A model generated the notes under the pieces. That model saw only the letters and a program-made list of their open reading frames with translations. It was not told the DNA's origin and searched no databases. A stretch of 64,000 bases of DNA, taken from the IMG/VR virus record IMGVR_UViG_3300035703_000010, positions 140,652-204,651 of that record. One strand, written 5' to 3'. Position numbers and translations under genes: made by a program. Of this stretch, positions 1-59,936 are shown piece after piece (position 1 is the stretch's first letter; each line of letters starts with the position of its first letter).

Positions 1-1
1 A

Positions 2-283
2 CTTGACATGAAATCAAAAACCGGTCAAAAGTTCCTCAAAGGAATTACTCATGAATGTATGCATGAGTTATTTGAAGCTAATCTTCTTTTGAAAAACTCA
101 AAAGACCATAGAGCTACTGACGTAAAAGAATTTAATCGTGAAGATTACATTGAAGAACTTGTCGATGCTCTTCACTACTTTTTTGAAATTGCAATTTGTA
201 GTGGTGTTACTATGGATGAACTTCATGAAGCATACATGAAGAAAGGTAGAATTAACATCAATAGAATTGAAAATGGATATTAA
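2..283 (+). CDS. All-alpha NTP pyrophosphatase (dUTPase/dCTPase, MazG-like superfamily), probably 5' truncated
   Basis: Motif YIEELVDALHYF and a C-terminal AYMKKGRININR; the frame is open to the window edge upstream of ATG 8. Confidence 0.7.
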   Translation, partial: LDMKSKTGQKFLKGITHECMHELFEANLLLKNSKDHRATDVKEFNREDYIEELVDALHYFFEIAICSGVTMDELHEAYMKKGRININRIENGY

Positions 284-8547: not shown

Positions 8548-9552
8548 ATGGCTAAAGGATTAGACGTCGGTACATCATTTATAGTTCTTGCTGAAGAAGG
8601 CGCAAAAGGAAAAGTTACATACAAAGATTTCCGCGATGCTTTTTATGTCATCAAACCTACAACTCCAATTGCAACAAAGATGATTGAAAAGGGATTAGCA
8701 GGAAAAACTTTCGTTAAGGATGCCGATGGTTCTTTCATCATCCTTGGAAAAGACGCAATTGAGAAGGCAGTCGAGAGAAACGATTCAGCTAAGAGACCGA
8801 TGTATAAAGGCGTAGTTTCTTCAAAAGAAAAAGATGCAAGAAGAATTTTGACTTATATCCTTAAAGAAGTATCAGGAACACCAGCAGAACCAGGAGAAAA
8901 ATTAGTCTTCTGCGTACCAGCTCAACCTGTCGATCAAGAAGATGAGGATTTTGACGTCGGATACCATGAAGACGTAATCGTAAAACTTCTTACAGAAGTT
9001 GGGTATTCAGCACGTGCAATAAATGAGGCCGAAGCTCTTTGTTATTCTGAACTAGAAAAGGATGATTATACTGGAGTGGCTCTATCATGGGGCGCGGGAA
9101 TGGTTAACGTTTGCGTAATGCTCAATGGTGAACCTGTCGTTACTTTCTCTACAACGAAGTCTGGTGACTGGGTTGATCGCATGGCTGCAGTGGCTACTGG
9201 AGAACCTGATTCTATCGTTCAGGCAGAAAAGGAAAATGGAGATTTTACCGTAGGTCAGCCGAATGACAATCAAGTTCTTGCTGCGGTTGCTTCTTATTAT
9301 GATCGTCTAATCGATTACACGACGAAGCAATTGGCATCATCCATGGAAGGACATAAGTCTATTCCAAAGTTCAAGGATCCGCTTCCAGTCGTCGTTGCTG
9401 GAGGAACCTCAAAAGCAAAAGGATTCGTCGATCTTTTTGCAAAGAAACTTAATGAGAATGGTTTTCCGCTTCCTGTCAAAGAAGTTCGTCATGCAGCTGA
9501 TCCACTTCATGCTGTTGCTCGCGGTTGCCTAATCGCTGCGCAAATTATGTAA
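8548..9552 (+). CDS. Actin-like ATPase (MreB/MamK/ParM superfamily)
   Basis: Phosphate-1 GLDVGT, connect-1 INEAEA, phosphate-2 SWGAG, adenosine VAGGTS, connect-2 AVARGCL; SD AGGAG. Confidence 0.88.
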   Translation: MAKGLDVGTSFIVLAEEGAKGKVTYKDFRDAFYVIKPTTPIATKMIEKGLAGKTFVKDADGSFIILGKDAIEKAVERNDSAKRPMYKGVVSSKEKDARRILTYILKEVSGTPAEPGEKLVFCVPAQPVDQEDEDFDVGYHEDVIVKLLTEVGYSARAINEAEALCYSELEKDDYTGVALSWGAGMVNVCVMLNGEPVVTFSTTKSGDWVDRMAAVATGEPDSIVQAEKENGDFTVGQPNDNQVLAAVASYYDRLIDYTTKQLASSMEGHKSIPKFKDPLPVVVAGGTSKAKGFVDLFAKKLNENGFPLPVKEVRHAADPLHAVARGCLIAAQIM

Positions 9553-9660: not shown

Positions 9661-12354
9661 ATGACTACAAAAGTTCCTTCACGATTCGTAGGCCTTCACA
9701 GCCACTCGGGGTTTAGTACCTTTGATGGACTTGATTATCCGCAAGAACACATCGATTACGTTCTAGAGAACGGTATGGATGCCTGGTCGTTGACTGACCA
9801 TGGTCACATGAACGGATTCTGCCATGCATATCTTCATGCCGAGAAGATGAAAAAATCAGGTAAGAACTTCAAGTTCATTCCTGGCTGCGAGATGTACGTC
9901 CATCCTGATCTAAAACAATGGCAGATCGATCTCGATAAGTCGAGAGAAAAACCGATCAAGGACGAATCTATCCTCACACCCCTCGCTGCGATCGTTGACG
10001 GTAACGATGAAACGACTGACATCGGTACCGATGAAGCCGCATTGACCATCGAAAACGAGGAGGAAACAAAATCAGGCAAGTACAACGACCCGATCAAACG
10101 TCGGCATCATCTCGTTGTCCTACCGAAAACATCAATTGGCCTACAAAGGTTATTCCATCTAGTTTCTCGAGGTTATTTGGAGGGCTTCTATAGGTTCCCA
10201 CGAGTTGATTATGCGATGTTGAAGGAAGCCGCAAAGGGAGGTCATCTCATGATTTCAACAGCATGCCTAGGTGGTGTGCTGAGCTATGACGTCTTCTCAA
10301 AGGTTCAACGCGTCAAGTTCGATGACCTATCACACAAACTTCTTGATGATAGGAGCTTGCTTGAGTCAACCTTGCTTGAGATGGGTAACACATATGACAA
10401 ATTGGTTAATGCTGTAGGACGAGACAATGTTTGCCTTGAGCTACAATTCAACAAACTTCCAGCCCAACATCTTGTTAACCGCGCAATTCTTGAATTTGCG
10501 AAGAAGAATTCATTGACTGATCGACTCGTTGTAACTTGCGATTCTCATTATTCTCGTCCAGACAACTGGAAAGAGCGTGAGATCTACAAGAAGCTAGGAT
10601 GGCTTAATTACCAAAACTTCGATCCGAACATGCTGCCGAAGTCGAAGGACGATCTGAAGTGCGAGTTGTATCCAAAGAACGCACCTCAGGTCTGGGATTC
10701 CTACCTGTCCACGTCTGAAGACATGTCATTCTATGATGATGATGTTGTTCGTGAAGCAATCGAGCGGACTCATGACATCGTCCACAATGAAATCGGCGAT
10801 ATCCATCCTGATAAGGAGATGAAGCTACCATCCTACGTCATCCCTGAAGGATTCACTGAAGATAAAGCATTGGTCGATGCATGTAAGAAAGGTCTCATTT
10901 GGCGAGGGCTCGATGACAAGCCTGAGTACATCGAACGTATCAAGTATGAGCTATCGATCATCAAAGGTAAGAAGTTCTCACGCTACTTCTTGACGATGAA
11001 GGCGATCATGGATTTGGCACGAGAACATATGTTGATCGGGCCAGGTCGCGGATCTGCTGCAGGTTCTCTCGTTGCTTATGTTCTTGGTGTTACTAACCTT
11101 GACCCTATTGAATACGACTTATCATTTGAACGCTTCCTTAACCCATCTCGACAAGGCGCTCCTGATATCGATTCTGACATTGGAGATCGCGATAAACTAA
11201 TCGAGCTCATGCGCGAAAACTTTGGTAATAACAATGTTATCCCAATTTCTAACTACAATACTTTTAAGTTAAAGAGCCTCATTAAAGACATCGCGCGGTT
11301 CTACAACATCCCATTTGAAGAAGTCAATGCAGCCTTAGCTCCCGTTGAAGATGACGTAAAGAAAGAGGTCTTTAAGCCAGGAGTTGATAAGAATCTTTTC
11401 GTCTTGACTTATGAAGATGCGATGAAGTATTCAAAGTCGATGCAAGACTTCGTCGCAGCGCATCCAGAGGTTGCAGAACCTATCGAGATCTTATTCAAAC
11501 AAAACCGATCTCTCGGCCGACATGCGGGTGGCGTCATCGTGTCGGAGAACGTTGCAGAGAGGATGCCTCTTATTCTTGCTCGTGGCGAACCTCAAACCCC
11601 ATGGGTCGAAGGTATGCACTATAAACACCTAGAAGAGTTCGGCTGGATCAAATTCGATCTACTAGGTCTTGAAACCCTGCGCATTATCGAACGAGCTATC
11701 TACCTGATTCTGCAACGTCGAGAAGGTGTAGCAAATCCAACATTTAAGGATGTGAAGGCTTGGTTCGACAAGCATATGGATCCTAAGAATATCGATCTCA
11801 ATGATCAAAGGGTGTATGAATACGTTTATCATGAGGGACGATTTGCTGGTGTGTTCCAGTGTACGCAACCTGGTGCTCAACGATTGTTCACTAAGGCAAA
11901 GCCTCGCAGCATCATCGACATTGCAACTTTGACATCGATCTATCGTCCTGGTCCTCTAGCGGCCAATGTCGATAAGATCTATATCGGCGCCAAGAACGAA
12001 CCTGATAAGATCGATTACCAGCACCCTTTGATCAAGAAGGTGCTTGAGTCTACATACGGATGTTTACATGGATCAACTGTTATTACAACTGATATTGGAG
12101 ATATTACGATTGAAAAAATCGTAGAAGATCAGTTAGTCGGAACAAAATTGCCATCTTTTAACGAAGAATCTTGCGAGATTGAACAAGACGAAATTGTTGC
12201 TGCAGTTTGCACTGGCGTTCAAGAGACTCTAACGATTGAACTTGAAGATGGAAAAACTATTCGTTTAACATCAGATCATAGAGTGTACACAACTAGAGGC
12301 TGGGTCGAGGCTGGAGATTTGACTGCAGAAGACGAAATTTTTGGAATTGAATAG
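9661..12354 (+). CDS. dnaE: DNA polymerase III alpha subunit, N-terminal fragment (800 aa) fused to a split intein N-part
   Basis: PHP domain LHSHS..STFDG, LTDHG; GPGRGSAAGSLVAY; catalytic PDIDSD; HAGG; KFDLLGL; extein ends at ..LESTYG. Confidence 0.97.
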   Translation: MTTKVPSRFVGLHSHSGFSTFDGLDYPQEHIDYVLENGMDAWSLTDHGHMNGFCHAYLHAEKMKKSGKNFKFIPGCEMYVHPDLKQWQIDLDKSREKPIKDESILTPLAAIVDGNDETTDIGTDEAALTIENEEETKSGKYNDPIKRRHHLVVLPKTSIGLQRLFHLVSRGYLEGFYRFPRVDYAMLKEAAKGGHLMISTACLGGVLSYDVFSKVQRVKFDDLSHKLLDDRSLLESTLLEMGNTYDKLVNAVGRDNVCLELQFNKLPAQHLVNRAILEFAKKNSLTDRLVVTCDSHYSRPDNWKEREIYKKLGWLNYQNFDPNMLPKSKDDLKCELYPKNAPQVWDSYLSTSEDMSFYDDDVVREAIERTHDIVHNEIGDIHPDKEMKLPSYVIPEGFTEDKALVDACKKGLIWRGLDDKPEYIERIKYELSIIKGKKFSRYFLTMKAIMDLAREHMLIGPGRGSAAGSLVAYVLGVTNLDPIEYDLSFERFLNPSRQGAPDIDSDIGDRDKLIELMRENFGNNNVIPISNYNTFKLKSLIKDIARFYNIPFEEVNAALAPVEDDVKKEVFKPGVDKNLFVLTYEDAMKYSKSMQDFVAAHPEVAEPIEILFKQNRSLGRHAGGVIVSENVAERMPLILARGEPQTPWVEGMHYKHLEEFGWIKFDLLGLETLRIIERAIYLILQRREGVANPTFKDVKAWFDKHMDPKNIDLNDQRVYEYVYHEGRFAGVFQCTQPGAQRLFTKAKPRSIIDIATLTSIYRPGPLAANVDKIYIGAKNEPDKIDYQHPLIKKVLESTYGCLHGSTVITTDIGDITIEKIVEDQLVGTKLPSFNEESCEIEQDEIVAAVCTGVQETLTIELEDGKTIRLTSDHRVYTTRGWVEAGDLTAEDEIFGIE
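12061..12351 (+). mobile_element. Split intein N-fragment (IntN, 97 aa)
   Basis: Begins CLHGST (block A, Cys1); block B TSDHRVYT.RGWVEAGDL; ends at a stop codon with no endonuclease domain. Confidence 0.93.
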
Positions 12355-12364
12355 ACATATGGGT

Positions 12365-12400
12365 ATATTTATCTTCCAAGAAAGAGGCTCTTGGAAGATG
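12365..12400 (+). promoter_or_regulatory. Putative late promoter (ATATTTA) plus start-codon-sequestering hairpin of the endonuclease gene
   Basis: ATATTTA 12365-12371; ATCTTCCAAGA (12371-12381) / TCTTGGAAGAT (12389-12399) perfect 11-bp stem covering the AT of ATG 12398. Confidence 0.75.
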
Positions 12401-13303
12401 AGAACTTGTGAATGTTGTGATAAAAAATTTGTTTATACAGGACCAAAAGGAAAAAATTATCCCGCAAAGACTTGCAGCGCAGAATGTTATAAGATATTAA
12501 GATCAAAAAAAATATCTCAATCAAACATCGATAGAAGGATACACGAAAAAGTAGAAAAGATTTGCGAAATTTGTGGTACGATAATCATAACAAATGATAC
12601 AGAGAACCAACGCATAACTTGCTCTAAGAAATGTCATTCTAAGAGATTATCGAAATTATACGCAGGAAGAAAAATAACTGAAGAGTGGCGACAAAATCAG
12701 AATAAGTCAAAGACTAAAGACAAAATTGTAAAGCATGGAGATTTTTCATGTGATAAATGTCAAAAACATTTTGATACCAACACTTCGCTTAGATCTCATA
12801 GATCATATTGTACTCCTGGAAATGAAGGTCATATTTGTTGCGAAATATGCAATAAGAGTTTTTCTACGCGAGGGTACAAGATCCATTTTAAGAGTCATGA
12901 TTTAATATGGAGATCGAAGACTACAAGTTCTCTTCAAAAATCTCTACTAACAAGAACGAAATGTCAGACTACCTCTAAATCAGAGTTAGAATTTTTTGAA
13001 AAATTAAAGTCTTTGTTGGGTGATGATGTTGTACACAAGTTTAAAATTGAAGGAATTACTCATGAATATGATTTTTTTGTTCCTTCAAAAAATGTTATCA
13101 TAGAGTTTGATGGTGATTATTGGCATGGCAATAAGAAGCTATACGAGTTATCTTCTAGAATGAAACGTCAATATCAGATTGATAAAGTGTGGAATGAAAA
13201 AGCAATAGCTGCTGGGTATAGAATAATAAGAGTTTGGGCATCAGAGTCAAAAGATTTTAAGTTGGAAAATTATGTTAACACCCTTGAAAATAAAGTCGAT
13301 TAA
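12398..13303 (+). CDS. Free-standing homing endonuclease: zinc fingers plus a Vsr/DUF559-like nuclease domain
   Basis: CxxC..TCS..C twice, CxxC..H..C and CxxC..H..H fingers, then SKSELEF..YDF..IIEFDGDYWH..G.RIIRVW; sits between the two intein halves; ATG 12398 preferred over 12341. Confidence 0.85.
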   Translation: MRTCECCDKKFVYTGPKGKNYPAKTCSAECYKILRSKKISQSNIDRRIHEKVEKICEICGTIIITNDTENQRITCSKKCHSKRLSKLYAGRKITEEWRQNQNKSKTKDKIVKHGDFSCDKCQKHFDTNTSLRSHRSYCTPGNEGHICCEICNKSFSTRGYKIHFKSHDLIWRSKTTSSLQKSLLTRTKCQTTSKSELEFFEKLKSLLGDDVVHKFKIEGITHEYDFFVPSKNVIIEFDGDYWHGNKKLYELSSRMKRQYQIDKVWNEKAIAAGYRIIRVWASESKDFKLENYVNTLENKVD

Positions 13304-13385
13304 ACGTGACGTACCTGCAAAAGTTTATGATATTCAAACCAAGAAAAATCATAACTTCATTGCAAATGGCTTCTTAGTTCATAAT
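13272..13385 (+). mobile_element. Split intein C-fragment (IntC, 38 aa)
   Basis: MLTPLKIKSIK..VYDIQT..NHNFIANGFLVHN followed by Cys+1 (TGC 13386-13388). Confidence 0.93.
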
Positions 13386-14555
13386 TGCATAATTTTTCAA
13401 GAGCAAACTATGAAGTTATGTTCTGTCGTTGCTGGGTTCCCGGAGGCTGAAACTGACACGATTCGTAGAAACATCATGAAGCGTTCTGCGTCTAAAAAGG
13501 ATGCAGCTGCTGCAGACGCGAAGAAGGCAAAAGAAGACTTCGTCGCCGGAGCGATGAAGAACGGTGTGCCTGAAAAGGTGGCTGATGAACTATACGAGAA
13601 GATTCTCTTCTTCTCTGGCTACGGCTTTAACGCTTCTCACGCAGTGTCTTACGCAATTGATTCATATTACTGTGCCTGGCTTCTCACCTACTTTGAGGAG
13701 GAATGGCTATGCGCTTACCTCGAGTCGATGTCAGGAAATGATGAAAAGCGTGCTAAGGCATTCTCTGAAGTCAAGGCATTAGGTTACAAGATCGTCAACA
13801 TCGACATCAACTATGCAACGAAGAGCTGGACGATCCTGGATGGTAAACGATTCATGCCTAGCTTCCTTTCATGTAAGGGTGTAGGGGAATCCGCAGTAGA
13901 AGAAATCATGGAAAATCGTCCGTATAAATCAGTGGAAGATATGTTATGGAATGAGGATGGGTCATGGAGGCATTCCAAGTTCAATAAACGTGCCTTGGAG
14001 GCCCTCATTGCAATTAAGGCATTTGATTCTCTTGATTGTATCGGTCATGATAGGACTTTCACCGGATACAAACACATGAGTGAGATCTTGATCAACAGAA
14101 ACGGCGATATCAAGAAACATACAAAGAAGAATCCGACTGCAGGAATCGAAGCATTCCGTGAAGCTTTGATCGATACGAAGAACATGGATGAATGGTCCAG
14201 ATCAGAATTGGTAGATAACAGCATAAAGTATCTCGGTTCATTCAACGCTGCGATGCTGATGCCAGAAGAGATCTTACAAAAGCTTGAGAGCAGAGGAGTC
14301 AAGTCTGTTGATGATTTATCTGAAAGCGACATCTATTGGTTTATCGTTTCTGATACAAAGCCTAAGAAAACGAAGACAGGAAAAAACTATTTGTTGTTAA
14401 CGATTACTGGGCTTGGAGGACAAAACCATAGGTTGTTCTGTTGGGGATGGAATGGCGAAACAGAAATTCCCAAGTACAGCGTTTGCCTTTCAGAAATCAC
14501 CGTAGATGGCTACGGTAATAAAACTTTCATGAGTAAGATTAAAGTCCTTGATTGA
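13272..14555 (+). CDS. dnaE: IntC fused to the DNA polymerase III alpha C-terminal fragment
   Basis: After the intein: CIIFQEQ, FSGYGFNASHAVSYA, helix-hairpin-helix KGVGESA, C-terminal OB-fold-like region. Confidence 0.95.
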   Translation: MLTPLKIKSIKRDVPAKVYDIQTKKNHNFIANGFLVHNCIIFQEQTMKLCSVVAGFPEAETDTIRRNIMKRSASKKDAAAADAKKAKEDFVAGAMKNGVPEKVADELYEKILFFSGYGFNASHAVSYAIDSYYCAWLLTYFEEEWLCAYLESMSGNDEKRAKAFSEVKALGYKIVNIDINYATKSWTILDGKRFMPSFLSCKGVGESAVEEIMENRPYKSVEDMLWNEDGSWRHSKFNKRALEALIAIKAFDSLDCIGHDRTFTGYKHMSEILINRNGDIKKHTKKNPTAGIEAFREALIDTKNMDEWSRSELVDNSIKYLGSFNAAMLMPEEILQKLESRGVKSVDDLSESDIYWFIVSDTKPKKTKTGKNYLLLTITGLGGQNHRLFCWGWNGETEIPKYSVCLSEITVDGYGNKTFMSKIKVLD

Positions 14556-14566
14556 AGAGGTATAAT

Positions 14567-15088
14567 ATGGGAATGGTTATTTTATTTGACGGGCCTGACA
14601 AGGTCGGTAAAACTGAAATGGTCAAAGAACTTTCTAAAAGGCTAAACGTTCCTTCGTTTAAGAATGAATCTGAATGGAAAGCTTTTTCTGATGATCCTGA
14701 TTATTTCGTTAACGCTTTAAGATACGGTGATCCATACTTTTATAATTTTCTAAAATCTACAGGGACATCAGTCATTCTAGATAGATCATATCCTTCAGAA
14801 TGGGTGTACTCTAAAGTTTACGGAAGAAAGACTGATCAAGAAGCGTTGAGGCATATCGACTCTTTGGCTGCATCGTTTGGAGTAAAGATTATTGTTCCAT
14901 ATCGTACTTCTTACGATGGATTGCATGATGATATGCATGACATAGATTCTGAACAAATGAAAAAGATTTCAGACGTTTATATCGAGTTTATTGAATGGAC
15001 GAAGTGTAATGTCCTACGTCTGTGTGTAGATTCAGAAGACCTTGATTGGGAAATGAAAACCATTCTAAAATTTATTGGGAAAAATTGA
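14567..15088 (+). CDS. Deoxynucleoside monophosphate (thymidylate-like) kinase
   Basis: P-loop FDGPDKVGKT and ILDRS..SEWVY. Confidence 0.85.
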   Translation: MGMVILFDGPDKVGKTEMVKELSKRLNVPSFKNESEWKAFSDDPDYFVNALRYGDPYFYNFLKSTGTSVILDRSYPSEWVYSKVYGRKTDQEALRHIDSLAASFGVKIIVPYRTSYDGLHDDMHDIDSEQMKKISDVYIEFIEWTKCNVLRLCVDSEDLDWEMKTILKFIGKN

Positions 15089-15092
15089 TATT

Positions 15093-16118
15093 ATGAAACT
15101 AGGAATCAGTTATTGGGGATTTTGTGAGCCATTTGAAGCATCTAAAGAGGCAAAGACTCCTGATGGTCATCGTTACGGTCGGCCTATCATGGTAGATGCC
15201 TTACTTAATCAAGGGCATGAAGTGTATGCGCTGCAGGAAAGAAGAGAATCTACTCCATATCCTGGAATCACATATGACATGGGATTTCCTGATATTGACG
15301 TTCTATTTGTAGAATGGCGTTGGAAGACATACAAGAATTCTGGACCAAACAAGTTTGAAAAAGATTTGGACAGACAGTTTGAACTATTGACTCATTATCA
15401 TGGAAAGATTCCTGTCGTTATTTGGGATTGTGATTATAAAGTCACACACTTAGATGAAATGATGTGGCCTGAAGCGATTATCGCAGATCCAGCTTTTGAG
15501 CCCAGGTATCTTACAAGAAAACGAGAAAGAATAATGTTCTGGACGGATTGGAAAAAGCTTCTTCCAGCTGTTTCTACATCATTTGAATATGGGTATGTAG
15601 GAAATAACTATGAGCGTCCTCAAGCTTTTGAAAAGTATTATTCTTTTCCGTCGTCGACTCTTCGCAATTATGGAATTCAAACGACAGTTCATGGAAATTG
15701 GTTGGAAGTTTCACCAGAAAGAGAATCTCCGAAAGTATTGATTTCTTCTCACCCTAGTATTTCATTTGCTCAAAGATTGAATTTCTATGAATCGATGAAG
15801 AGATTAAACTCATTTATTTGTACGACACATATTACAAAACCAGAATATGCTCAAAGAGGTTTTGCTTCTCCTAGATATGTTGAGAATATCGTTTCGAACG
15901 TGCCAGCTTTGGTTCCAAAAGAATTTTTGAAGTCGAATCTATTAGGGAAAGACTGGGCAGTTGAAGGTGGAGATTCTGTCATTGAAAAAGTCAAATTAAT
16001 TTTTTCAATGAATTTAGAAGAAAGAAATTCGTTAATTTTAGAACAGGAAAATAATTTAAAATCTAGCGGTGTATTTTCAGTAAGTAATGTTGTAGATTTT
16101 CTTGAGTCGGTTAAGTGA
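15093..16118 (+). CDS. GT-B glycosyltransferase, candidate DNA base glycosyltransferase
   Basis: MKLGISYWGF..TPDG, GFPDIDVLFVEWRW, YVGNNYER, SPRYVE; resembles, from memory, GTs neighbouring modified-base thymidylate synthase homologues; located between the kinase and an epimerase. Confidence 0.65.
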   Translation: MKLGISYWGFCEPFEASKEAKTPDGHRYGRPIMVDALLNQGHEVYALQERRESTPYPGITYDMGFPDIDVLFVEWRWKTYKNSGPNKFEKDLDRQFELLTHYHGKIPVVIWDCDYKVTHLDEMMWPEAIIADPAFEPRYLTRKRERIMFWTDWKKLLPAVSTSFEYGYVGNNYERPQAFEKYYSFPSSTLRNYGIQTTVHGNWLEVSPERESPKVLISSHPSISFAQRLNFYESMKRLNSFICTTHITKPEYAQRGFASPRYVENIVSNVPALVPKEFLKSNLLGKDWAVEGGDSVIEKVKLIFSMNLEERNSLILEQENNLKSSGVFSVSNVVDFLESVK

Positions 16119-16125
16119 GGAAAAA

Positions 16126-17121
16126 ATGAAAGTATTAATTACAGGTATTGCTGGTCTTCTTGGTGCAAACTTTTCTCGTTATTTGCTTGATAAAGGCTAT
16201 AAAGTAGTTGGAATCGATGATTTAAGCGGCGGGTATGAAGATTCAGTACCAAAGGATGCTACTTTTTATAAGCTTGACTTGACCGACCAAAAGAAGGTTG
16301 ACGAGATTTTTAACGCAGAAAAGCCTGATTACGTTTTTCATTTTGCAGCATATGCAGCTGAAGGTCTTAGTCCATTCATAAGAAATTACAATTACACAAA
16401 TAATGTATTAGCTTCAACCAATGTAATCAACGCTTGCGTAAATCATGATGTAAAGAAAATCATCTTTACGTCGTCAATGGCTGTTTATGGAGTAGGAAAT
16501 CCTCCATTTACCGAAGAGCAACTACCAACGCCTGAAGATCCATATGGTATTGCAAAATATGCAGTTGAAATGGATCTGAAGTTGGCTCATGAAATGTTTG
16601 GTCTTCGATACAGCATTGTTCGACCGCACAATGTAGTTGGAATCTACCAGAACATTTGGGATCGTTATCGCAACGTAATTGGAATTTGGATTCGAAAAGC
16701 AATGAATGGCGAACCACTTTCGATTTTTGGAGATGGTACACAAGTTCGAGCATTTTCAGACATTAAGTTTTATTTGGAACCATTTGAAAAATTAATGGAT
16801 TCTTACGATGGAGAAATCTTCAACATCGGTGCTGACAAACATTACACAATTAATGAAGCTGCAGACACAGTAATCGGCGTTGCAAAAGAGCTAGGAATTA
16901 ACGCAACTAAAGTTCATCTAGAAAAGAGGAATGAAGTTCATACAGCATATTGTGATCATACTAAGGCTCATAAGCTCTTGTCTTTTGAGGACAAAACAGA
17001 TTTGCGAGAAACCGTTATGAAGATGTTTAAGTGGGCCATGGAACAGCCAAATCGTCCTACAAAGAGCATGAACTATGAAATTGAAAAGAACATGTATTCT
17101 TTTTGGAAGAACACAAAATGA
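16126..17121 (+). CDS. NAD-dependent NDP-sugar epimerase/dehydratase (extended SDR) 1
   Basis: GIAGLLG, FTSSMAVYG, YGIAK, RPHNVVG; SD GAGGA. Confidence 0.93.
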   Translation: MKVLITGIAGLLGANFSRYLLDKGYKVVGIDDLSGGYEDSVPKDATFYKLDLTDQKKVDEIFNAEKPDYVFHFAAYAAEGLSPFIRNYNYTNNVLASTNVINACVNHDVKKIIFTSSMAVYGVGNPPFTEEQLPTPEDPYGIAKYAVEMDLKLAHEMFGLRYSIVRPHNVVGIYQNIWDRYRNVIGIWIRKAMNGEPLSIFGDGTQVRAFSDIKFYLEPFEKLMDSYDGEIFNIGADKHYTINEAADTVIGVAKELGINATKVHLEKRNEVHTAYCDHTKAHKLLSFEDKTDLRETVMKMFKWAMEQPNRPTKSMNYEIEKNMYSFWKNTK

Positions 17122-17897
17122 TCACGAATTTATCTTTTCCTGAAAATTTAAAAGATAGAGAGAAATTTATTTTTGATCAAGTTTTGTTAGGAAACTTTGA
17201 TGCTTCATGGGTTCCTTTAACCTATGATATTTCTGGTAAAAAAGTTATTTTGAACGTTATGTCAGACGCGCTAAAAGTTGGAGGAATTAGAGTAAACGTC
17301 TCTGCGTTCCTCCAACAACAGCTAGCAGATGTTTTTGATGCTTCTTTGTTAACTGCGTTAGTTGCAGATTTGATGTACGTTCACGCGTCGAATATCCTAA
17401 ATCCAGTTCCACAACCGATATCATCAACAGTGTCTTCTATGATATCTCATGATGATAAAGTGACTAAACAATTGAAGTCTTATAATGGCGGAATAGTTTC
17501 TACAGTGGGAAAACATTGGATTTTAGATAAAAAAATAGATCAGCAACCTAGTAAAGCTTGCAATTATGGATGGCATTTTACAGGATCTAATTTTCAAGGA
17601 ATTAATGGATTTCCTTCTACAACATTACAAAAAACGTTAGATGGTAAACCAATCAAAGTGATTCAGCCGAATGCTACTGCTCATGATGCAAAGCATTCTG
17701 ATTATTCACAAATTTGTCAATTGGTTTCTCAACAATGTTGGATTAATGGAGTAGAACATAGATTTTCTGATCTATTGCAAGATTCTTCATTGTGTAATTT
17801 GGTCAACCACAATGGTACATTAAAAAATACTAGACAACCTGGAGTTCAAAAGATTTCTGGCCAAGTTGTGTTATTTCCAACAACAATTTCACCTTGA
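17118..17897 (+). CDS. Conserved hypothetical protein (..YGWH..IQP..H..H.DYSQ family)
   Basis: SDALKVG..RV, NYGWH, IQP.ATAHD..HSDYSQ; function unknown. Confidence 0.5.
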   Translation: MITNLSFPENLKDREKFIFDQVLLGNFDASWVPLTYDISGKKVILNVMSDALKVGGIRVNVSAFLQQQLADVFDASLLTALVADLMYVHASNILNPVPQPISSTVSSMISHDDKVTKQLKSYNGGIVSTVGKHWILDKKIDQQPSKACNYGWHFTGSNFQGINGFPSTTLQKTLDGKPIKVIQPNATAHDAKHSDYSQICQLVSQQCWINGVEHRFSDLLQDSSLCNLVNHNGTLKNTRQPGVQKISGQVVLFPTTISP

Positions 17898-17904
17898 GGA
17901 TATT

Positions 17905-18102
17905 ATGCCAACTTATGAATATCAATGCGAATCTTGTTCATTTTTTATGGAAAAAGTTCAATCAATAAAGGATGATCCTCTATCTGATTGTCCTCATTGT
18001 AATAAAAACTGCTTAAAACGCTTGATTTCAGTAGGAGGAGGATTTACTTTAAAGGGTGGAGGTTGGTACAAGGATCTTTATTCTTCTACTCCTTCGAAGT
18101 AG
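17905..18102 (+). CDS. FmdB-family zinc ribbon protein
   Basis: MPTYEYQCESC..CPHC..LKRLIS..F.LKGGGWY; SD GAGG. Confidence 0.88.
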   Translation: MPTYEYQCESCSFFMEKVQSIKDDPLSDCPHCNKNCLKRLISVGGGFTLKGGGWYKDLYSSTPSK

Positions 18103-18805
18103 ATCCCAACTTTTTTACGATGTTTCTGCTTGTTCTAGCAGCAGGATGAGATGGTTTAATTAAATTATGTTCGTCTTCATCAATTTTTGACTCAAATTTA
18201 GGTTTGATTTCTCCTGTCTCACAATTCAATATTATGTTGTATCCACCTTTTCCAAGCTTTAAAGGCTCAGTTAATGTGGATAGATAATCATATCTTCCTG
18301 CATTTATCATTTCTTTGTCAAACCATTGTTCTAGAACGAAATTAGAAACGCTGACATTAGTACCATTGACATTAATTTCATATGAATTGCTTTCAACAGG
18401 ATCACATAATTCAACAGCTACAAATGTTTCGTCTCCTCTATGCGACCATAAATTGATATAAGGATTATAAAAAGTTTCAAGTATTTCATGAGAAAGAACT
18501 ACGGAGACGGATTTTGATCCAGATAATACCGTTCCTCCATTGTCTAAAACAGGATTAACAAAAACTCTACCCCAAACTTTTCCATCTGGGTCTTGTGTGT
18601 GGTATCCTAATGCGCTAGCATGATCTGAATCATCCATTATCACCATTGGAAATCCATCGTTGCCTTCTATTTTTATTTCCCATGGTAGTCTTCCTAAAAT
18701 AGGACATGCATGATCTCTAAGTTGAATTCTGCACGCCTCGACCATAAGTTCGACATCTTGAGGAGATATTCTGTTTGATTTGTTTATGACGTTGAAAGTT
18801 TTCAT
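18086..18805 (-). CDS. Putative zinc metallopeptidase-like protein
   Basis: ALGYH, LSHEILE, ELCDPVE, VSVSNFV. Confidence 0.55.
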   Translation of the reverse strand: MKTFNVINKSNRISPQDVELMVEACRIQLRDHACPILGRLPWEIKIEGNDGFPMVIMDDSDHASALGYHTQDPDGKVWGRVFVNPVLDNGGTVLSGSKSVSVVLSHEILETFYNPYINLWSHRGDETFVAVELCDPVESNSYEINVNGTNVSVSNFVLEQWFDKEMINAGRYDYLSTLTEPLKLGKGGYNIILNCETGEIKPKFESKIDEDEHNLIKPSHPAARTSRNIVKKLGSTSKE

Positions 18806-18863
18806 AGATATTCATAATTAACAATGAACTTTTAAAATAAAAAAGCGTAATATAGGAAATGTT

Positions 18864-19832
18864 ATGAAAACCAAGAAAGCACTATTAACAGGCGCAGCTG
18901 GATTTATTGGAAGCAACTTGGCAAAAGAACTTTTGTCTAAAGGCGTAGACTTAGATGTTGTTGATGATCTTTCAAGCGGTCATGTAGAGTTTTTACCTCA
19001 GCAGCTTCAAGAAACGTTAATAAAAGAGGATTTTTCATCACAAAATGTTTTAGATTTGATTAAAAACAAAAAATATGATGCTGTTTTTCACATTGCAGCA
19101 ATTCCTCGAGTCAGCTATTCTGTAGATTTTCCAGTACAAACAAATGACAATAACGTATCTAAGACCCTGTCATTAATTGATGCTTGTAGAGGTAATGTAG
19201 GAAGATTTGTTTTTGCTTCTTCATCATCAGTGTACGGCGATACGAATATTTTACCAACTCCTGTTACATGTGAAAAAAATCCTAAATCTCCATATGCATT
19301 ACAAAAATCTATCATAGAAGATTATTTGAAAATTTATTACAATTTGTATGGATTGGACTCTGCTTGCTTAAGGTTTTTTAACGTATTCGGTCCTCATCAG
19401 CTTGGAAATTCTCCGTATTCTACTGCTTTAGGGGCTTGGTTGACTGCAATCCATTCTGGAAATCAAATGCGATCTGATGGAGACGGATCACAATCCAGAG
19501 ATTTATGTTATGTTGATAACGTTGTTGACGTTTGTATAAGAGCAGCAGAGTCCCAACAAGAATTAAAAGCCGTTAAATTAAACGTAGCTTGCGGAGTAAG
19601 AACTACGAATAAAGAAATTCTTTCTTACCTTTTATCCAAATATCCAAATGCAAAATATTATGATGCACCATGGAGACCAGGTGACGTAATGCATACATTA
19701 GCTGATATTTCTATGACAAAGGAAGTTTTAGGTTATGAGCCTTTAGTCCTTCCTTGGGAAGGGATTGATAAAACCATTAAATGGTATGATGAAAATTGGG
19801 ATATGATTAAAACTCTAGGTCTTTCAAAATGA
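18864..19832 (+). CDS. NAD-dependent NDP-sugar epimerase/dehydratase (extended SDR) 2
   Basis: GAAGFIG, HIAAIPRV, ASSSSVYG, YALQK, RFFNVFG, RPGDV. Confidence 0.93.
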   Translation: MKTKKALLTGAAGFIGSNLAKELLSKGVDLDVVDDLSSGHVEFLPQQLQETLIKEDFSSQNVLDLIKNKKYDAVFHIAAIPRVSYSVDFPVQTNDNNVSKTLSLIDACRGNVGRFVFASSSSVYGDTNILPTPVTCEKNPKSPYALQKSIIEDYLKIYYNLYGLDSACLRFFNVFGPHQLGNSPYSTALGAWLTAIHSGNQMRSDGDGSQSRDLCYVDNVVDVCIRAAESQQELKAVKLNVACGVRTTNKEILSYLLSKYPNAKYYDAPWRPGDVMHTLADISMTKEVLGYEPLVLPWEGIDKTIKWYDENWDMIKTLGLSK

Positions 19833-20830
19833 AAGTTTACGAGAATTTCACTGAAGCTTACGTCGACATTGTCAAAGATGTCTATACAGAGCCTGAATTC
19901 ATTTCGTCTCCTCGCGGAATGAAGATCAAGGAGATCTTGGGATACCAATTCAAGATCCTTAATCCTCGAAACAGAATTCCTTATGTTCCTGGAAGAGAGC
20001 TGTCGATCCACTACATGATCGCAGAGCTTCTTTGGTATTTGAGCGGAAATGATTCAACGGATTGGATCTCGAACTATTCTGCTTTCTGGTCAAAGATCTC
20101 AGATGACGGCAAGACGGCCAACAGCGCTTATGGCGCTCGTATTTTCAAGCCTCATGATAGAATCGCAGCTAAGGTAAAACAGGACTGGACCCAATGGAAT
20201 TATGTCGTAAATGAACTAAAGTCCGACCCTGATTCTCGCCGTGCCGTTGTTCATATCAGGTCTCCGCAGGATTCCATTCTTGCTAGCCTTGATGTGCCGT
20301 GTACTTTATCTCTTCAATTCTTTTTGAGGAATGACAAGGTTCACATGGTAACATCCATGAGATCATCCGATGTTATCCTTGGTTTAGCTTATGATGTTCC
20401 AGCATTTACTATCTTCCAAGAACTTTTGGCTCTTCAACTTACTCTAGAGCTAGGTCGTCCTATTGGTCTTGGGACATACACTCATTTAAGCGCTTCTCTT
20501 CATTTGTACGAGAGGCATTTTAAAATGGCAGAAAAAATACTTGAGGAAGATAAGAAGCAGGATTATAGAAATGTTTTAGAGATGCCTCCTATGCCTTCTA
20601 TGCCTCCGCTTGATGATCTGATGGTAGCGGAACGTGAGATTAAAAAGTGTATGACGGTTCCTGTTCTTTCAAGGGCGATTAATAACATCAACTTGAAAAG
20701 TGATTATTGGAACGATTGGTGTAGAGTTTTAGCATCTCATAAAGCTATTAAACTAAACGATGAACAAGCTTGTAACGAATTACTTTCTAATACAAAATTT
20801 GAAGGATACAGGTATTTCATAAAATCATGA
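19829..20830 (+). CDS. Thymidylate synthase homologue predicted to act on dCMP (dCMP hydroxymethylase-like)
   Basis: AELLWYLSG, SRRAV, catalytic PC (Cys158), MRSSDVILGLAYD with Asp189 at the position of E. coli ThyA Asn177, H.YERH. Confidence 0.8.
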   Translation: MKVYENFTEAYVDIVKDVYTEPEFISSPRGMKIKEILGYQFKILNPRNRIPYVPGRELSIHYMIAELLWYLSGNDSTDWISNYSAFWSKISDDGKTANSAYGARIFKPHDRIAAKVKQDWTQWNYVVNELKSDPDSRRAVVHIRSPQDSILASLDVPCTLSLQFFLRNDKVHMVTSMRSSDVILGLAYDVPAFTIFQELLALQLTLELGRPIGLGTYTHLSASLHLYERHFKMAEKILEEDKKQDYRNVLEMPPMPSMPPLDDLMVAEREIKKCMTVPVLSRAINNINLKSDYWNDWCRVLASHKAIKLNDEQACNELLSNTKFEGYRYFIKS

Positions 20831-21405
20831 CTACGACATTTACTGTATTTTGTGGACCCATGTTTTCTGCTAAGACCACATCTTTGTTGTCTGTTTTAGA
20901 CAGGTTTAAATATCAAGGTAAGAAGATTGCAGTTTTTAAACCCATGCTAGATGATCGATACAGTGTAGATAACATATCAACTCATGGAGGATGGAAAATT
21001 CCTGCAACTTGCGTAAAATTAGGAACCGATATTCTTGAGCATCTTGCAAATATGGATGAAAATCCTAATGTAATTGCAGTAGATGAAGCTTTTATGATTC
21101 CTGGAGTTGCCGATGTTCTTATTTGGTTGTATCGAAGCGGTTATTCTATCGTTGTTTCCAGTTTAGACTTGTCAGCAACTGGAAAGTCATTTAATGAAAT
21201 CGAAAAAATGCTTCCTTGGGCAACTAAGGTCGAAAAACTAAGCGCAGTTTGTACAGTATGTAATAAAGATGCTTTTTACACATATAAAAAGCAAACAGGC
21301 GGAGATGAGATTGAAGTAGGAGGCGTTGAATTGTATGAGCCTAGATGTTCTAGATGCCATCCTATAATTCTAAATCAAGATAGAAATTATGCCATGAAGG
21401 ATTGA
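20827..21405 (+). CDS. tdk: Thymidine kinase
   Basis: GPMFSAKTT, VDEA, C-terminal CxxC..CxxC, IEVGG.E.YEPRC. Confidence 0.95.
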   Translation: MTTTFTVFCGPMFSAKTTSLLSVLDRFKYQGKKIAVFKPMLDDRYSVDNISTHGGWKIPATCVKLGTDILEHLANMDENPNVIAVDEAFMIPGVADVLIWLYRSGYSIVVSSLDLSATGKSFNEIEKMLPWATKVEKLSAVCTVCNKDAFYTYKKQTGGDEIEVGGVELYEPRCSRCHPIILNQDRNYAMKD

Positions 21406-21408
21406 TTT

Positions 21409-21888
21409 ATGTCAAATTCTTTAGAACGTAGTATTCAAAAATTGAGCGTTTTCATGAAAATGTGCAATGAATTGTCTACGCTGTCATATGATGACAAATA
21501 TAAAGTTGCTTCTATAATAATAACGAAGGATTATAGAGAAGTTTGTGCTATAGGATATAATGGAGGATACAAAGGCGGTCCTAATAAAAGATCATCTTTA
21601 GAACAAGGAAAATCAGGGTTTTTGCATGCTGAAGAGAATGCATTGTTCCATTTATGCAAACCTTATGAACTTAGAGGTGATCTTTTGATGCTATGCACTC
21701 ATAAACCATGTTCAATGTGCGCAAGAAGAATTGTCAATAGTGGGATTAAGAACATTATCTATTATTCTGATTATATTGATGCAGAAGCCGCTTCCGATGA
21801 TATTTTTAAGGTTACTGGAACTTCTTGTGTTAAATTTGATCAACTTTTGCAGAATCCAGCTATTATCCTGAATATTCTAGAGTCCTGA
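21409..21888 (+). CDS. dCMP deaminase
   Basis: IGYNG, HAEENA, PCSMC, IVNSGI. Confidence 0.93.
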   Translation: MSNSLERSIQKLSVFMKMCNELSTLSYDDKYKVASIIITKDYREVCAIGYNGGYKGGPNKRSSLEQGKSGFLHAEENALFHLCKPYELRGDLLMLCTHKPCSMCARRIVNSGIKNIIYYSDYIDAEAASDDIFKVTGTSCVKFDQLLQNPAIILNILES

Positions 21889-21916: not shown

Positions 21917-22282
21917 ATGAAGCATAAGCTTACAGAAAATTACATTATCAATATTATGAGAGAAGAATGGCAAAAAAAAATTAATTCTTTAATCTCAGAA
22001 TCAAAGAAAGAAAAGCCGCGTGGTCTTCGCATGCAGGTTGATGTTGACGGCGACGGAAATAAAGAAAACGTTATAGACGTTGGATTACGAGTTCAAAAAA
22101 AGAAGCCTGACGATAAAAGGATCAATGTAAAAAGTGATCCTTCCATGGGTTTAGTATATACGGTTGTTTCAGTAAATGAACGAGATGGTACAATAACGTT
22201 AGGACGTCCAGGATCAGGAGACGGAGATAAAACAATAGTTATAACTAAACAAGCTTTTGAAAGCGAATACGAAAGAAAGTGA
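21917..22282 (+). CDS. Hypothetical protein with leader motif
   Basis: MKHKLTENYIINIMREEW; ATAATTA at 21892-21898; SD GCGGAG. Confidence 0.55.
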   Translation: MKHKLTENYIINIMREEWQKKINSLISESKKEKPRGLRMQVDVDGDGNKENVIDVGLRVQKKKPDDKRINVKSDPSMGLVYTVVSVNERDGTITLGRPGSGDGDKTIVITKQAFESEYERK

Positions 22283-22292
22283 TAATAACATC

Positions 22293-23024
22293 ATGAACAT
22301 TAAATCTTTAGGCGTAGATTTAGATAACATCTTAAAAGATGTTGTGAAAAATTCTATTAAAACACAAACAAATCAGTTACCAACTATTGAAAAGTTAGAT
22401 GAAGCTTATGTTGCTGAACCAAAGGTTTTTAAGCAAGTATCAGAATTTTCTACACAAAAAACTAAAGATTCACATGATGCGTTATACAAAGGTTATGTAG
22501 AGTCATTAAACAAAATTTCTGCCGAATTAGATTCAGCCGATCGATCTTCTGCTGATTCAAAGCATTCTCAATATCGTTCTTTAAAGCTTGATGAAGTTTA
22601 TAATTTAAATGCAACATGGCTTCATGAACTATATTTTGCAAATGCATTTGATCCTCATTCTGAAATTACCATGGATTCTTTATCATACATGAGGCTTGAA
22701 CGCGATTTCGGAACTTTTGAAGATTGGCAAAGAGATTTTATGGCATGTGCAATGTCAGCCGGTAGCGGATGGGCAGTTTGCGGATATCACATGTTTCTTC
22801 AACGATACGTTAATACAGTAATAAGCAATCACAGTGATAATGTAATGTTGGGACTTTATCCCATTATCGTTGTAGACATGTGGGAACATGCTTATTATCG
22901 TGATTATCTAAATGACAAAAAGAGTCATTTAGTTGCAAGAATGAGAGAATTTGATTGGGAAGTTATCGAAGAAAGAATTAAAAAAGCAGAACTATTCGCC
23001 CAGACGCTAAAGGTGAACCGATGA
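22293..23024 (+). CDS. Fe/Mn superoxide dismutase
   Basis: Ligand pattern SHDALY.GYV, LHELYF, GSGWAV, DMWEHAYY; extra N-terminal segment; start moved to ATG 22293. Confidence 0.9.
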   Translation: MNIKSLGVDLDNILKDVVKNSIKTQTNQLPTIEKLDEAYVAEPKVFKQVSEFSTQKTKDSHDALYKGYVESLNKISAELDSADRSSADSKHSQYRSLKLDEVYNLNATWLHELYFANAFDPHSEITMDSLSYMRLERDFGTFEDWQRDFMACAMSAGSGWAVCGYHMFLQRYVNTVISNHSDNVMLGLYPIIVVDMWEHAYYRDYLNDKKSHLVARMREFDWEVIEERIKKAELFAQTLKVNR

Positions 23025-26342: not shown

Positions 26343-27101
26343 ATGAATGTTCAAGAAGCCATAGTAGCAGCCGTTCAGTTTGAACCTAAAATACTTAAAG
26401 TTCATGAAAACCTTGGTACGGCAGTTCAGCTTGTTCATGAAGCAGCTGCTAAAGGAGCTTCTGTTATCGTTCTTCCTGAACTTTGTATTAGCGGATACGC
26501 TTTAAGAAATTCTTCTGAGGCAATGGAATGTGCTCAAACAAGAGATGGGTATCAAACTCAAGCCTTTAAAAGAATTGCTGAAAATTATAATTGTCATGTA
26601 GTTTTAGGATACGTAGAACTTAGAGACGGTAATCTTTATAATTCTGCTGGAGTAATAGGTCCTACTGGGTTGGTTTCAAACCATCAAAAACATAATCTTT
26701 GGGGTAGTGATTATCTTTGGGCAACCCCATCTGATGCAATCAATCCAGTAGTGATTACAAGAGCTGGAAGATTAGGCACACTTATTTGCCGCGACGCGAT
26801 GAACAATTATAGAAATTCTTATAAGTTTTTTAATGAAAACCATCGTTTCTATAAAAAAGGATCTATAGATACATTAGCACTATTAACCAACTGGAGCGGT
26901 GAGTATGGCTATCCAGATAATAACTGGGTTGATTTAGCTGAAGAAACATGTTCAAACGTCATCGTTTCTAACAGGGTTGGCAAAGAAAGAGACTTAAGTT
27001 TCAAAGGCGGATCATGCATCATCGATAAAAATCGAAAGATTTGGTCTAATGGTTCATCATTTACCGAATCAGCAGTCGTCGGTGGAGTCATTCTTTTATG
27101 A
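26343..27101 (+). CDS. Carbon-nitrogen hydrolase (nitrilase superfamily)
   Basis: AAVQF, VLPEL (Glu), HQKHNL (Lys), LICRD (Cys), SNRVG. Confidence 0.93.
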   Translation: MNVQEAIVAAVQFEPKILKVHENLGTAVQLVHEAAAKGASVIVLPELCISGYALRNSSEAMECAQTRDGYQTQAFKRIAENYNCHVVLGYVELRDGNLYNSAGVIGPTGLVSNHQKHNLWGSDYLWATPSDAINPVVITRAGRLGTLICRDAMNNYRNSYKFFNENHRFYKKGSIDTLALLTNWSGEYGYPDNNWVDLAEETCSNVIVSNRVGKERDLSFKGGSCIIDKNRKIWSNGSSFTESAVVGGVILL

Positions 27102-52051: not shown

Positions 52052-52275
52052 TAAACTACCTTTGATAACTCGCTTGAAAGAAAAGGACCTTCTATTAAAT
52101 CTTCAAAAAGAACATAATGATTCCAACAATAACTTTCAGAAACATTTTCTACATGTTTACTAGGATAATTGTTTGATGGTTTCGAAGACACAACAATACC
52201 ACATTTAGGTTTAAAGATATGATATACTAAGTCTCCGTTGTTTATTTTGCTTAACAAATTATACCTTAGAATCAT
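52051..52275 (-). CDS. Small hypothetical protein
   Basis: NGDLVYH..GIVV; coupled. Confidence 0.45.
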   Translation of the reverse strand: MILRYNLLSKINNGDLVYHIFKPKCGIVVSSKPSNNYPSKHVENVSESYCWNHYVLFEDLIEGPFLSSELSKVV

Positions 52276-53869: not shown

Positions 53870-53911
53870 ATAATGTGATAATAGTAAGGTCTTTATCAAT
53901 CTTGTACACGG

Positions 53912-59905: not shown

Positions 59906-59936
59906 CTCTAGCCTTAGAAGAGGATACATATAAATT

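Follow-up and report, generated by a model that had tools for sequence, protein, structure and literature searches.

The window analyzed here comprises the last 64 kb of the 204,651-bp IMG/VR viral contig IMGVR_UViG_3300035703_000010 (positions 140,652-204,651), which comes from an uncultured aquatic jumbo phage of ~205 kb. Directly after dnaE, which encodes a family-C DNA polymerase, the window carries a cluster of genes for a nucleotide kinase, a GT-B glycosyltransferase (GT), two epimerases of the short-chain dehydrogenase/reductase family (SDR1 and SDR2), a homolog of the thymidylate synthase ThyA, a thymidine kinase, and a deoxycytidine monophosphate (dCMP) deaminase. These genes probably encode a T4-type pathway, in which cytosine is replaced by 5-hydroxymethylcytosine (5hmC) before replication and the DNA is then glycosylated, in a phage that probably replicates with DnaE.

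According to the proposed pathway, the ThyA homolog would convert dCMP to 5-hydroxymethyl-dCMP (5hm-dCMP) with methylene-tetrahydrofolate, the adjacent kinase would carry this product to the diphosphate, and the nucleoside diphosphate (NDP) kinase of the host would complete 5hm-dCTP. A nucleoside triphosphate (NTP) pyrophosphohydrolase encoded upstream would probably deplete dCTP/dUTP, and dTTP would be supplied separately by the dCMP deaminase, ThyX, and a canonical thymidylate kinase (Tmk). After incorporation of 5hm-dC by the trans-spliced DnaE, the GT-B enzyme would put a sugar on the 5-hydroxymethyl group in DNA, drawing on UDP-galactose (from SDR1) and/or UDP-N-acetylgalactosamine (UDP-GalNAc; from SDR2), and the sugar-decorated DNA would be shielded from host nucleases. 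An earlier sequence-only reading of the region had proposed a 5-substituted dCMP, its incorporation by DnaE rather than by a family-B polymerase, and its subsequent glycosylation. Computational support was obtained for each of these steps: for the product, from an active-site signature that is invariant in homologs and narrows the substituent to hydroxymethyl; for DnaE, from its position beside the locus in relatives and from the lack of another polymerase in the 74 kb examined; and for glycosylation, from the fold of the GT and from the replacement of its gene in relatives by genes for a PF11440 enzyme and a carbamoyltransferase.

Active-site signature of the ThyA homolog

Among solved structures, the ThyA homolog is most similar to MilA, the CMP 5-hydroxymethylase of mildiomycin biosynthesis (5jnh/5b6d, 4e-45), followed by canonical ThyA (~1e-19) and T4 gp42 (1e-12). 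The alignment with MilA spans residues 4-311 and includes the extra C-terminal helical domain of that enzyme. The catalytic Cys158 (Cys146 in E. coli ThyA) is present, as are the framework residues Glu58, Arg126/127, Arg166, His207, and Tyr209 (ThyA numbering). Residues 177-189, MRSSDVILGLAYD, end with Asp189, which aligns with Asn177 of E. coli ThyA, Asp179 of T4 gp42, and an Asp of MilA; the GAT codon and the alignment both bear out the substitution of Asp for Asn177 that had been read from the sequence before. A change of Asn177 to Asp selects cytosine as the substrate base (PMC13326640, PMC8670742).

The alignment with ThyA, T4 gp42, and other dCMP-modifying homologs revealed a hydroxymethylase-type signature at further positions. 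Asp155 occupies position 143 (Leu in ThyA) within the motif SLDVPC, three residues before the catalytic Cys, and Thr159 occupies position 147 (His in ThyA), both as in T4 gp42 and MilA. An acidic residue in place of Leu143 accompanies non-methyl products, whereas a bulky hydrophobic residue there excludes water in methyl-forming enzymes (PMC13326640). The preference of MilA for the ribonucleotide CMP depends on Ala176 and Lys133, which are Ser and Arg in deoxy-specific enzymes. The window protein has these deoxy-type residues, Ser179 and Arg137 (positions 167 and 126), in the motifs MRSSD and DPDSRR, compared with MRAND and DPDSKR in MilA. All 12 checked positions show no variation in 121 of 121 homologs; the 120 nearest metagenomic ones are 55-95% identical. 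The substituent is narrowed to hydroxymethyl because Asp is found at both 177 and 143, Asp169 is kept, the Ser/Arg pair is of the deoxy type, and these residues are invariant in homologs. On these residues, the signature is that of a predicted dCMP hydroxymethylase, and not that of a methylase or a 5-hydroxylase.

A canonical ThyA was rejected on the basis of Asp, Asp, and Thr at positions 177, 143, and 147, and of a score of 93 bits for the best NCBIfam ThyA model (cutoff 327). A pattern-based scan of GTDB genomes, which has limited sensitivity, gave no match to the ThyA homolog.

Exchange of putative modifying enzymes among related loci

As far as gene order and sequence families can indicate, the strongest support for the pathway comes from a comparison of eight IMG/VR loci and six further contigs. 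The block comprising dnaE and the run of genes for the ThyA homolog, thymidine kinase, deaminase, and superoxide dismutase is conserved among them, whereas the content between dnaE and the ThyA homolog (hereafter, the slot) is variable. The GT family of the window is also found in three of the loci (L002-L004; the comparison was made without L008) and in three divergent contigs with GTs that are 51-57% identical. In all three divergent contigs the GT follows a small kinase-sized open reading frame (ORF), and SDR and ThyA homolog genes flank it; one of them (L018, 5393-7473) has a UDP-galactopyranose mutase gene beside the GT.

Other relatives have the slot filled differently. An unrelated protein of 428-434 amino acids (aa) occupies it in four of them (L001, L006, L014, and L016). 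This family has no Pfam, PHROG, or PDB match, and hhalign found no similarity between it and the GT family of the window. It was also considered as a relative of alpha-glycosyltransferases and discarded, being unrelated by BLASTP to the alpha-GT of phage G and to the AGT-family protein of L015 described below. In L005 (5584-7999), the slot holds a NodU/TobZ-type carbamoyltransferase together with an uncharacterized protein of 221 aa. A NodU-type enzyme encoded beside Asp177 ThyA homologs on cytosine-modified contigs has been shown to convert 5hmC to 5-carbamoyloxymethylcytosine (PMC8670742). The fourth variant, L015 (2900-6022), encodes a protein of the T4 alpha-glucosyltransferase (AGT) family (PF11440), a C5 DNA methyltransferase, and a small cytidylyltransferase-like nucleotidyltransferase; this AGT-family protein shares 38% identity with gp313 of Bacillus phage G, annotated as an alpha-GT. 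Four unrelated families therefore alternate beside an invariant hydroxymethylase-type enzyme, and two of the four represent families with known activity on the 5hmC hydroxyl, as expected if the slot enzyme decorates 5hmC.

Glycosyltransferase and proposed sugar supply

The GT belongs to a virus-only family of 220 metagenomic members, which are found on contigs of up to 288 kb. It has no Pfam, PHROG, or NCBIfam match, and a few family members match PF13524 weakly. Comparison with PDB sequences gave matches at chance level only, tblastn against 50,697 phage records gave none, and a pattern-based scan of GTDB genomes, again of limited sensitivity, found no member of the family. The AlphaFold2 model, for which 28 family members were used (pLDDT 93.9, pTM 0.91), matched GT-B enzymes throughout the 50 Foldseek matches listed for the PDB. 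T4 beta-glucosyltransferase (BGT; 1qkj) has the highest TM-score among these matches (TMq 0.66, E 1e-9), and T4 AGT bound to DNA (1y6g) reached a TMq of 0.61. Profile and structure searches thus place the protein in no family by sequence and in the GT-B fold by model, and the previous judgment that it does not resemble T4 BGT holds for the sequence and fails for the fold.

Alignment of the GT family with T4 BGT by hhalign is weak (probability 16%, E 0.0016, C-terminal 78 columns). Within it, the family-invariant residues R267 and E270 pair with R269 and E272 of T4 BGT, which we take to be UDP-binding residues. The median isoelectric point of the family is 6.0, as compared with 9.05 for T4 BGT; this value is uninformative as a proxy for DNA binding, because neither the AGT-family protein from L015 (6.3) nor either of the RB69 GT1 pieces (5.0-5.4) is basic. 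The predicted transfer of a sugar to 5hmC in DNA is supported by synteny and by the slot exchange with the PF11440 enzyme.

Both SDRs are most similar to 4-epimerases. The best PDB match of SDR1 is GalE of Thermotoga maritima (4zrm, 9e-46), and SDR2 matches the UDP-GlcNAc/GalNAc 4-epimerases 6dnt (1.6e-55), WbgU (1e-47), and WbpP (7.5e-43); for both proteins, dehydratases and decarboxylases are much weaker matches. An SDR gene flanks the ThyA homolog in almost every relative. Experiments have demonstrated phage GTs that depend on a partner epimerase to put hexose, N-acetylhexosamine, or hexuronate on 5hmC, and GT-B matches in metaviromes are associated with ThyA homologs and epimerases (Pyle et al., bioRxiv 10.1101/2023.12.21.572611). 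The assignment of UDP-galactose and/or UDP-GalNAc as the donor is an evenly balanced call.

Nucleotide kinase and DNA polymerase

The kinase is related to RB69 gp45, a nucleotide kinase encoded next to GT1 and a ThyA homolog (BLASTP E 1e-8), and is distinct from the canonical Tmk encoded upstream. A dNMP kinase of the T4 gp1 type was ruled out (BLASTP E 1.7), which corrects the earlier designation as a dNMP kinase: the protein is Tmk-like and unrelated to T4 gp1. The gene order of kinase, GT, and ThyA homolog is that of RB69 gp45-48, DLP3 gp78-80, and RL38J1 214-216. As both ThyX and a canonical Tmk are encoded upstream, dTTP synthesis does not depend on the ThyA homolog or on the second kinase.

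The dnaE gene (9661-14555) consists of three ORFs in three reading frames, in a "fractured gene" arrangement: two pieces of the polymerase gene, each with one half of a split intein, are separated by a free-standing homing endonuclease gene. The exteins sum to ~1190 aa, compared with 1177-1199 aa for the uninterrupted DnaE proteins of relatives. The interruption is common to L001 and L014, and dnaE is uninterrupted in L015, L017, and L019. In the relatives whose locus extends that far, dnaE lies directly upstream of the cluster, and from this position DnaE is plausible as the replicase. Directly upstream of dnaE in the window is a gene for a full-length actin-fold protein of the Volactin family (8548-9552; PF25216, 1.1e-66), a family reported from archaea and surprising to find within the replication module of a phage.

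Alternative interpretations

Several points weigh against the proposed pathway. We infer all of its chemistry from gene content, active-site signatures, fold, and synteny. The rules for Asp143 and Asp169 rest on few characterized enzymes, and dCTP/dUTP is a candidate substrate of the pyrophosphohydrolase. No second polymerase turned up in the 74 kb covered, and one may be encoded elsewhere on the 205-kb contig. In the sequence comparisons made, no proven DNA glycosyltransferase showed significant homology to the GT, and the GT-B fold alone is silent on the acceptor. The two SDRs score 145 (SDR1) and 143 bits against the NCBIfam GalE model TIGR01179 (cutoff 262), and 153 bits was obtained against a TviC cutoff of 760; with scores below these equivalog cutoffs, the sugar is a guess. 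An SDR2 homolog persists in L005, the variant with the carbamoyltransferase, in which no GT was recognized, so that the link of SDR2 to DNA glycosylation is not strict. Finally, the collagen-like proteins and the GT2 of the window could consume NDP-sugars.

The last of these points would also fit a different acceptor, with the GT and the epimerases acting on virion or collagen-like proteins, on host envelope glycans, or on a small molecule, and the DNA carrying bare 5hmC. The isolation of the GT sequence from proven DNA GTs, the retention of SDR2 in L005, and the presence of three collagen-repeat proteins and a GT2 in the window all agree with such an acceptor, and the top Foldseek matches of the GT include the small-molecule and lipid GTs SenB, BshA, and PimA. 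We regard this alternative as unlikely. Matches to BshA, PimA, and sucrose-phosphate synthase are also seen for the proven DNA GTs of phages RB69 and DLP3 (PMC13326640), so they are no argument against a DNA substrate, and it is T4 BGT that has the highest TM-score. The adjacency of GT, kinase, and ThyA homolog is kept even though the GTs are only 51-57% identical, and the enzymes that replace the GT in the slot belong to the T4 AGT family or resemble the 5hmC-acting carbamoyltransferase.

It is also rather improbable that the ThyA homolog is a flavin-dependent 5-hydroxy-dCMP synthase of the RB69 gp48, DLP3 gp80, and RL38J1 gp216 type, in which case the GT would form an O-glycoside on C5 and the product would be glycosyl-5-hydroxycytosine. 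The module order of the window is the same as in those phages, its kinase is homologous to RB69 gp45, one relative has a UDP-galactopyranose mutase like RL38J1, and the known synthases also match MilA best by structure (PMC13326640). Those synthases are marked by Asn in place of Asp169, in RB69, DLP3, RL38J1, and others, including all enzymes tested (PMC13326640). The window protein keeps Asp at this position (Asp181, in RSSD, vs. RSQN in RB69 gp48), and the diagnostic change is likewise absent from the 120 closest homologs, which argues against a flavin 5-hydroxy-dCMP synthase. The carbamoyltransferase of L005 also speaks against it, as its family includes an enzyme that acts on the hydroxymethyl group of 5hmC (PMC8670742).

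It is very improbable that the ThyA homolog is a dCMP methylase with 5-methyl-dCMP as its product, or a thymidylate synthase, whether ordinary or inactive, and that the sugar genes are unrelated to DNA: although the Asn177Asp change alone converts ThyA to a dCMP methylase (PMC8670742) and the protein is labeled "thymidylate synthase" in source annotations, it has Asp at 143 instead of a water-excluding bulky hydrophobic residue, ThyX is encoded upstream, and the neighboring transferases of the window and its relatives need a hydroxyl acceptor.

Genomic setting and other genes of the window

Table 1. Positions of the cluster genes, the polymerase gene, and upstream and comparison features (window coordinates unless a locus is named)
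Feature	Position	Strand	Basis or content
dnaE N-terminal piece (PHP, Pol III alpha, finger) with N-terminal split-intein half starting at CLHGS	9661..12354	+	PF07733 2e-56, PF02811, PF17657; Intein_splicing residues 815-893
Free-standing homing endonuclease gene, other reading frame	12341..13303	+	phrog_559 3.6e-13; phrog_3339, phrog_9084
38-residue C-terminal intein half (ends VHN, followed by C) with dnaE C-terminal piece (finger end, HHH_6)	13272..14555	+	Intein_splicing residues 6-38, PF17657, PF14579
Tmk-like P-loop nucleotide kinase; predicted 5hm-dCMP kinase	14567..15088	+	phrog_761 thymidylate kinase 1.6e-13
GT-B fold glycosyltransferase, virus-only family; predicted 5hmC-DNA glycosyltransferase	15093..16118	+	AlphaFold2 model and Foldseek
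SDR1, GalE-like UDP-hexose 4-epimerase	16126..17121	+	PF01370 1e-50
Conserved 259-aa protein with many invariant His/Asp/Cys	17118..17897	+	196 homologs; AlphaFold2 pLDDT 89.7
FmdB-family CxxC zinc-ribbon protein	17905..18102	+	PF09723 3e-13; TIGR02605 2e-18
Conserved 239-aa protein, SHE..E motif	18086..18805	-	very large unannotated family
SDR2, UDP-HexNAc/hexose 4-epimerase-like (WbgU/WbpP group)	18864..19832	+	PF01370 8e-50
ThyA-superfamily enzyme with MilA-type C-terminal helical domain; predicted dCMP 5-hydroxymethylase	19829..20830	+	PF00303 6e-31
Asp189 codon GAT	20393..20395	+	equivalent to E. coli ThyA Asn177
Thymidine kinase (salvage)	20827..21405	+	PF00265 1.7e-38
dCMP deaminase	21409..21888	+	PF00383 1.2e-16; phrog_174 1.2e-26
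All-alpha NTP pyrophosphohydrolase, candidate dCTPase/dUTPase	L013:10498-10866; 3' part is window 1..283	+	starts 86 nt before the window
Canonical Tmk	L013:9514-10110		upstream of the window, same contig
ThyX	L013:8858-9517		upstream of the window, same contig, after ribonucleotide reductase, DnaB, FEN, RecA, and SSB genes
Upstream stretch of the same contig	L013, 10.6 kb		gp32-like single-stranded DNA-binding protein (SSB), RecA, 5'-3' exonuclease (FEN), DnaB helicase, ribonucleotide reductase
Bacillus phage G neighborhood	L012 227448-240461 (~13 kb)		gp313 alpha-GT, gp315 Tmk, gp317 deaminase, gp319 ThyA homolog, gp329 DnaE-like

The portion of the contig that was read covers 74 of 205 kb, namely the window and the L013 stretch upstream of it, the other 130 kb lying outside. 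From the upstream genes for SSB, RecA, DnaB, ribonucleotide reductase, ThyX, and Tmk (Table 1), of which the last two are within ~1-2 kb of the window start, the cluster can be assigned to a jumbo-phage module of replication and nucleotide genes. The window has a GC content of ~36%. Each gene of the cluster has tens to thousands of metagenomic homologs and their order is kept in related viral contigs, and we therefore consider these genes to be real. When the cluster was compared with GenBank phages as DNA, the sole match was one of 750 nt at 67% identity, in a marine single-cell virus, and the cluster is thus without a cultured relative at this level. No tRNA genes were found, and a scan for promoters and terminators gave fewer sites than in shuffled sequence.

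The genes that follow dnaE in the sequence-only reading (kinase, GT, two epimerases, thymidylate synthase homolog, thymidine kinase, and dCMP deaminase) are correctly named and placed, with Pfam, PHROG, and fold assignments in agreement; three ORFs between the epimerases were not mentioned there. The first of them encodes the 259-aa protein, for which a confident model has no fold match in the PDB or BFVD at E<0.2; it is found in relatives with glycosyl-type slots and is absent from the carbamoyltransferase variant. The second is the FmdB-family gene. The third, on the minus strand, belongs to a family with 2829 representatives (50% clustering) at E<=1e-3, and neither a PDB profile search nor a Pfam scan of 26 family members found anything for it.

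The candidate dCTPase/dUTPase matches PF08761 dUTPase_2 (4e-6 and 1.3e-5) and the nucleotide pyrophosphohydrolase family phrog_12184 (1.3e-13). The thymidine kinase and dCMP deaminase genes are of a general salvage type; the predicted role of the deaminase would be to feed dUMP to ThyX.

The remainder of the window encodes functions of other kinds. Auxiliary genes include those for GMP reductase/IMPDH (6590-7666), an Fe/Mn superoxide dismutase (22257-23024), a C-N hydrolase (26343-27101), an FGE-sulfatase domain protein (31368-32246), isocitrate lyase (34019-35269), and a GroEL-type chaperonin (52259-53899). At 45132-49645, three consecutive collagen-triple-helix-repeat proteins, possibly virion fiber glycoproteins, follow a 950-aa ORF, and a fusion of GT2 and methyltransferase is encoded on the minus strand (62044-63348). 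A complete DUF444(YeaH)-SpoVR-PrkA trio, a bacterial module associated with stress and sporulation, is present at 57432-61874. Small ORFs of the window also match ClpP, IF-1, SpoU methylase, NUDIX, Hsp20, and pterin-4a-carbinolamine dehydratase.

Comparison with known systems

The T4 system and the window have in common an Asp177/Asp143 ThyA homolog encoded near a GT-B transferase (beta-gt and gene 42 are adjacent in T4), as well as a kinase of their own, an NTP pyrophosphohydrolase (the gp56 dCTPase in T4), a dCMP deaminase, a thymidine kinase, and a separate thymidylate synthase. The ThyA homolog of the window, by contrast, is MilA-like, with a C-terminal helical domain, and is 28% identical to gp42; its kinase is Tmk-like, whereas that of T4 is gp1; its dTMP would come from ThyX, and that of T4 from td. 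The sequence of the window GT is not significantly similar to that of BGT, the polymerase belongs to family C (DnaE) rather than family B, and the 4-epimerases imply a sugar other than glucose.

Phages RB69, DLP3, and RL38J1 (Lee et al., NAR 2026; PMC13326640) share with the window the core order of Tmk-like kinase, first GT, and MilA-like ThyA homolog, and they also encode their own NDP-sugar supply. In contrast to the window, which keeps Asp169, their ThyA homologs have Asn at this position and carry out flavin-dependent C5 hydroxylation, leading to glycosyl-5-hydroxycytosine. Sugar supply in these phages relies on an arabinose-5-phosphate isomerase, a kinase, and a uridylyltransferase, instead of the 4-epimerases of the window, and comparison of the window GT family with the two RB69 GT1 pieces by hhalign showed no similarity. 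Metagenomic GT-epimerase clusters (bioRxiv 10.1101/2023.12.21.572611) resemble the window in their BGT-like GT-B folds, in the need of epimerases for activity, and in the association of GT-B enzymes with ThyA; however, those tested make 5hmC after replication, by methyltransferase and TET-like oxidation, whereas in the window 5hmC would be made as a nucleotide. The 5hmC carbamoyltransferase identified by MetaGPA (PMC8670742) has its counterpart in L005, a close relative with a NodU-type carbamoyltransferase in the same slot. MilA has Asp at 177 and 143 and keeps Asp169, as the window protein does, and differs in Ala176 and Lys133, which favor CMP; the window protein has Ser and Arg and is part of a phage replication module.

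The closest cultured relative of the ThyA homolog is that of Bacillus phage G (Donellivirus), gp319, with 32% identity over 98% of the length, the same Asp177/Asp143/Asp169 signature, and the C-terminal domain. Phage G has a GT of the T4 alpha-GT family and, by tblastn, no homolog of the window GT, and no epimerases were seen in its neighborhood. Judged by its gene set, phage G would be a cultured DnaE phage with glucosyl-5hmC in its DNA, and we found no report on the chemistry of phage G DNA. The association of a DnaE-like polymerase with an Asp177 ThyA homolog and an alpha-GT in that phage means that such a combination is not new.

Implications for phage DNA modification

The logic of the pathway, the signature residues, the epimerase-dependent GTs, and the ThyA-linked GT-B clusters of metaviromes have all been published before. 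As the general type of pathway is already established, the gain lies in breadth and not in principle. The GT-B family of the window is previously undescribed and is accompanied by epimerases of its own. After the gene set of phage G, the window provides a second, uncultured example of a family-C replicase beside a cytosine-replacement pathway.

A more specific proposal is put forward tentatively and may well not hold. The virion DNA of this widespread aquatic clade would carry a structurally uncharacterized cytosine, e.g., 5-(galactosyl- or N-acetylgalactosaminyl-oxymethyl)cytosine, perhaps tailored by the 259-aa and 239-aa proteins encoded between the epimerases. This base would be installed by a GT family of which no member has been described, on DNA copied by a DnaE joined through trans-splicing, and the slot would be an exchange point for at least four unrelated 5hmC-modifying families.

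Hypermodification of phage DNA is a barrier to restriction enzymes and to many CRISPR nucleases, and the enzymes involved have found use as tools, such as T4 BGT in the mapping of 5hmC. From a virus-only GT-B family that comes with epimerases of its own, a transferase could be obtained that acts on 5hmC with a new sugar specificity. Close relatives that carry different transferases in one slot offer a natural series for studying how modification chemistry diversifies.

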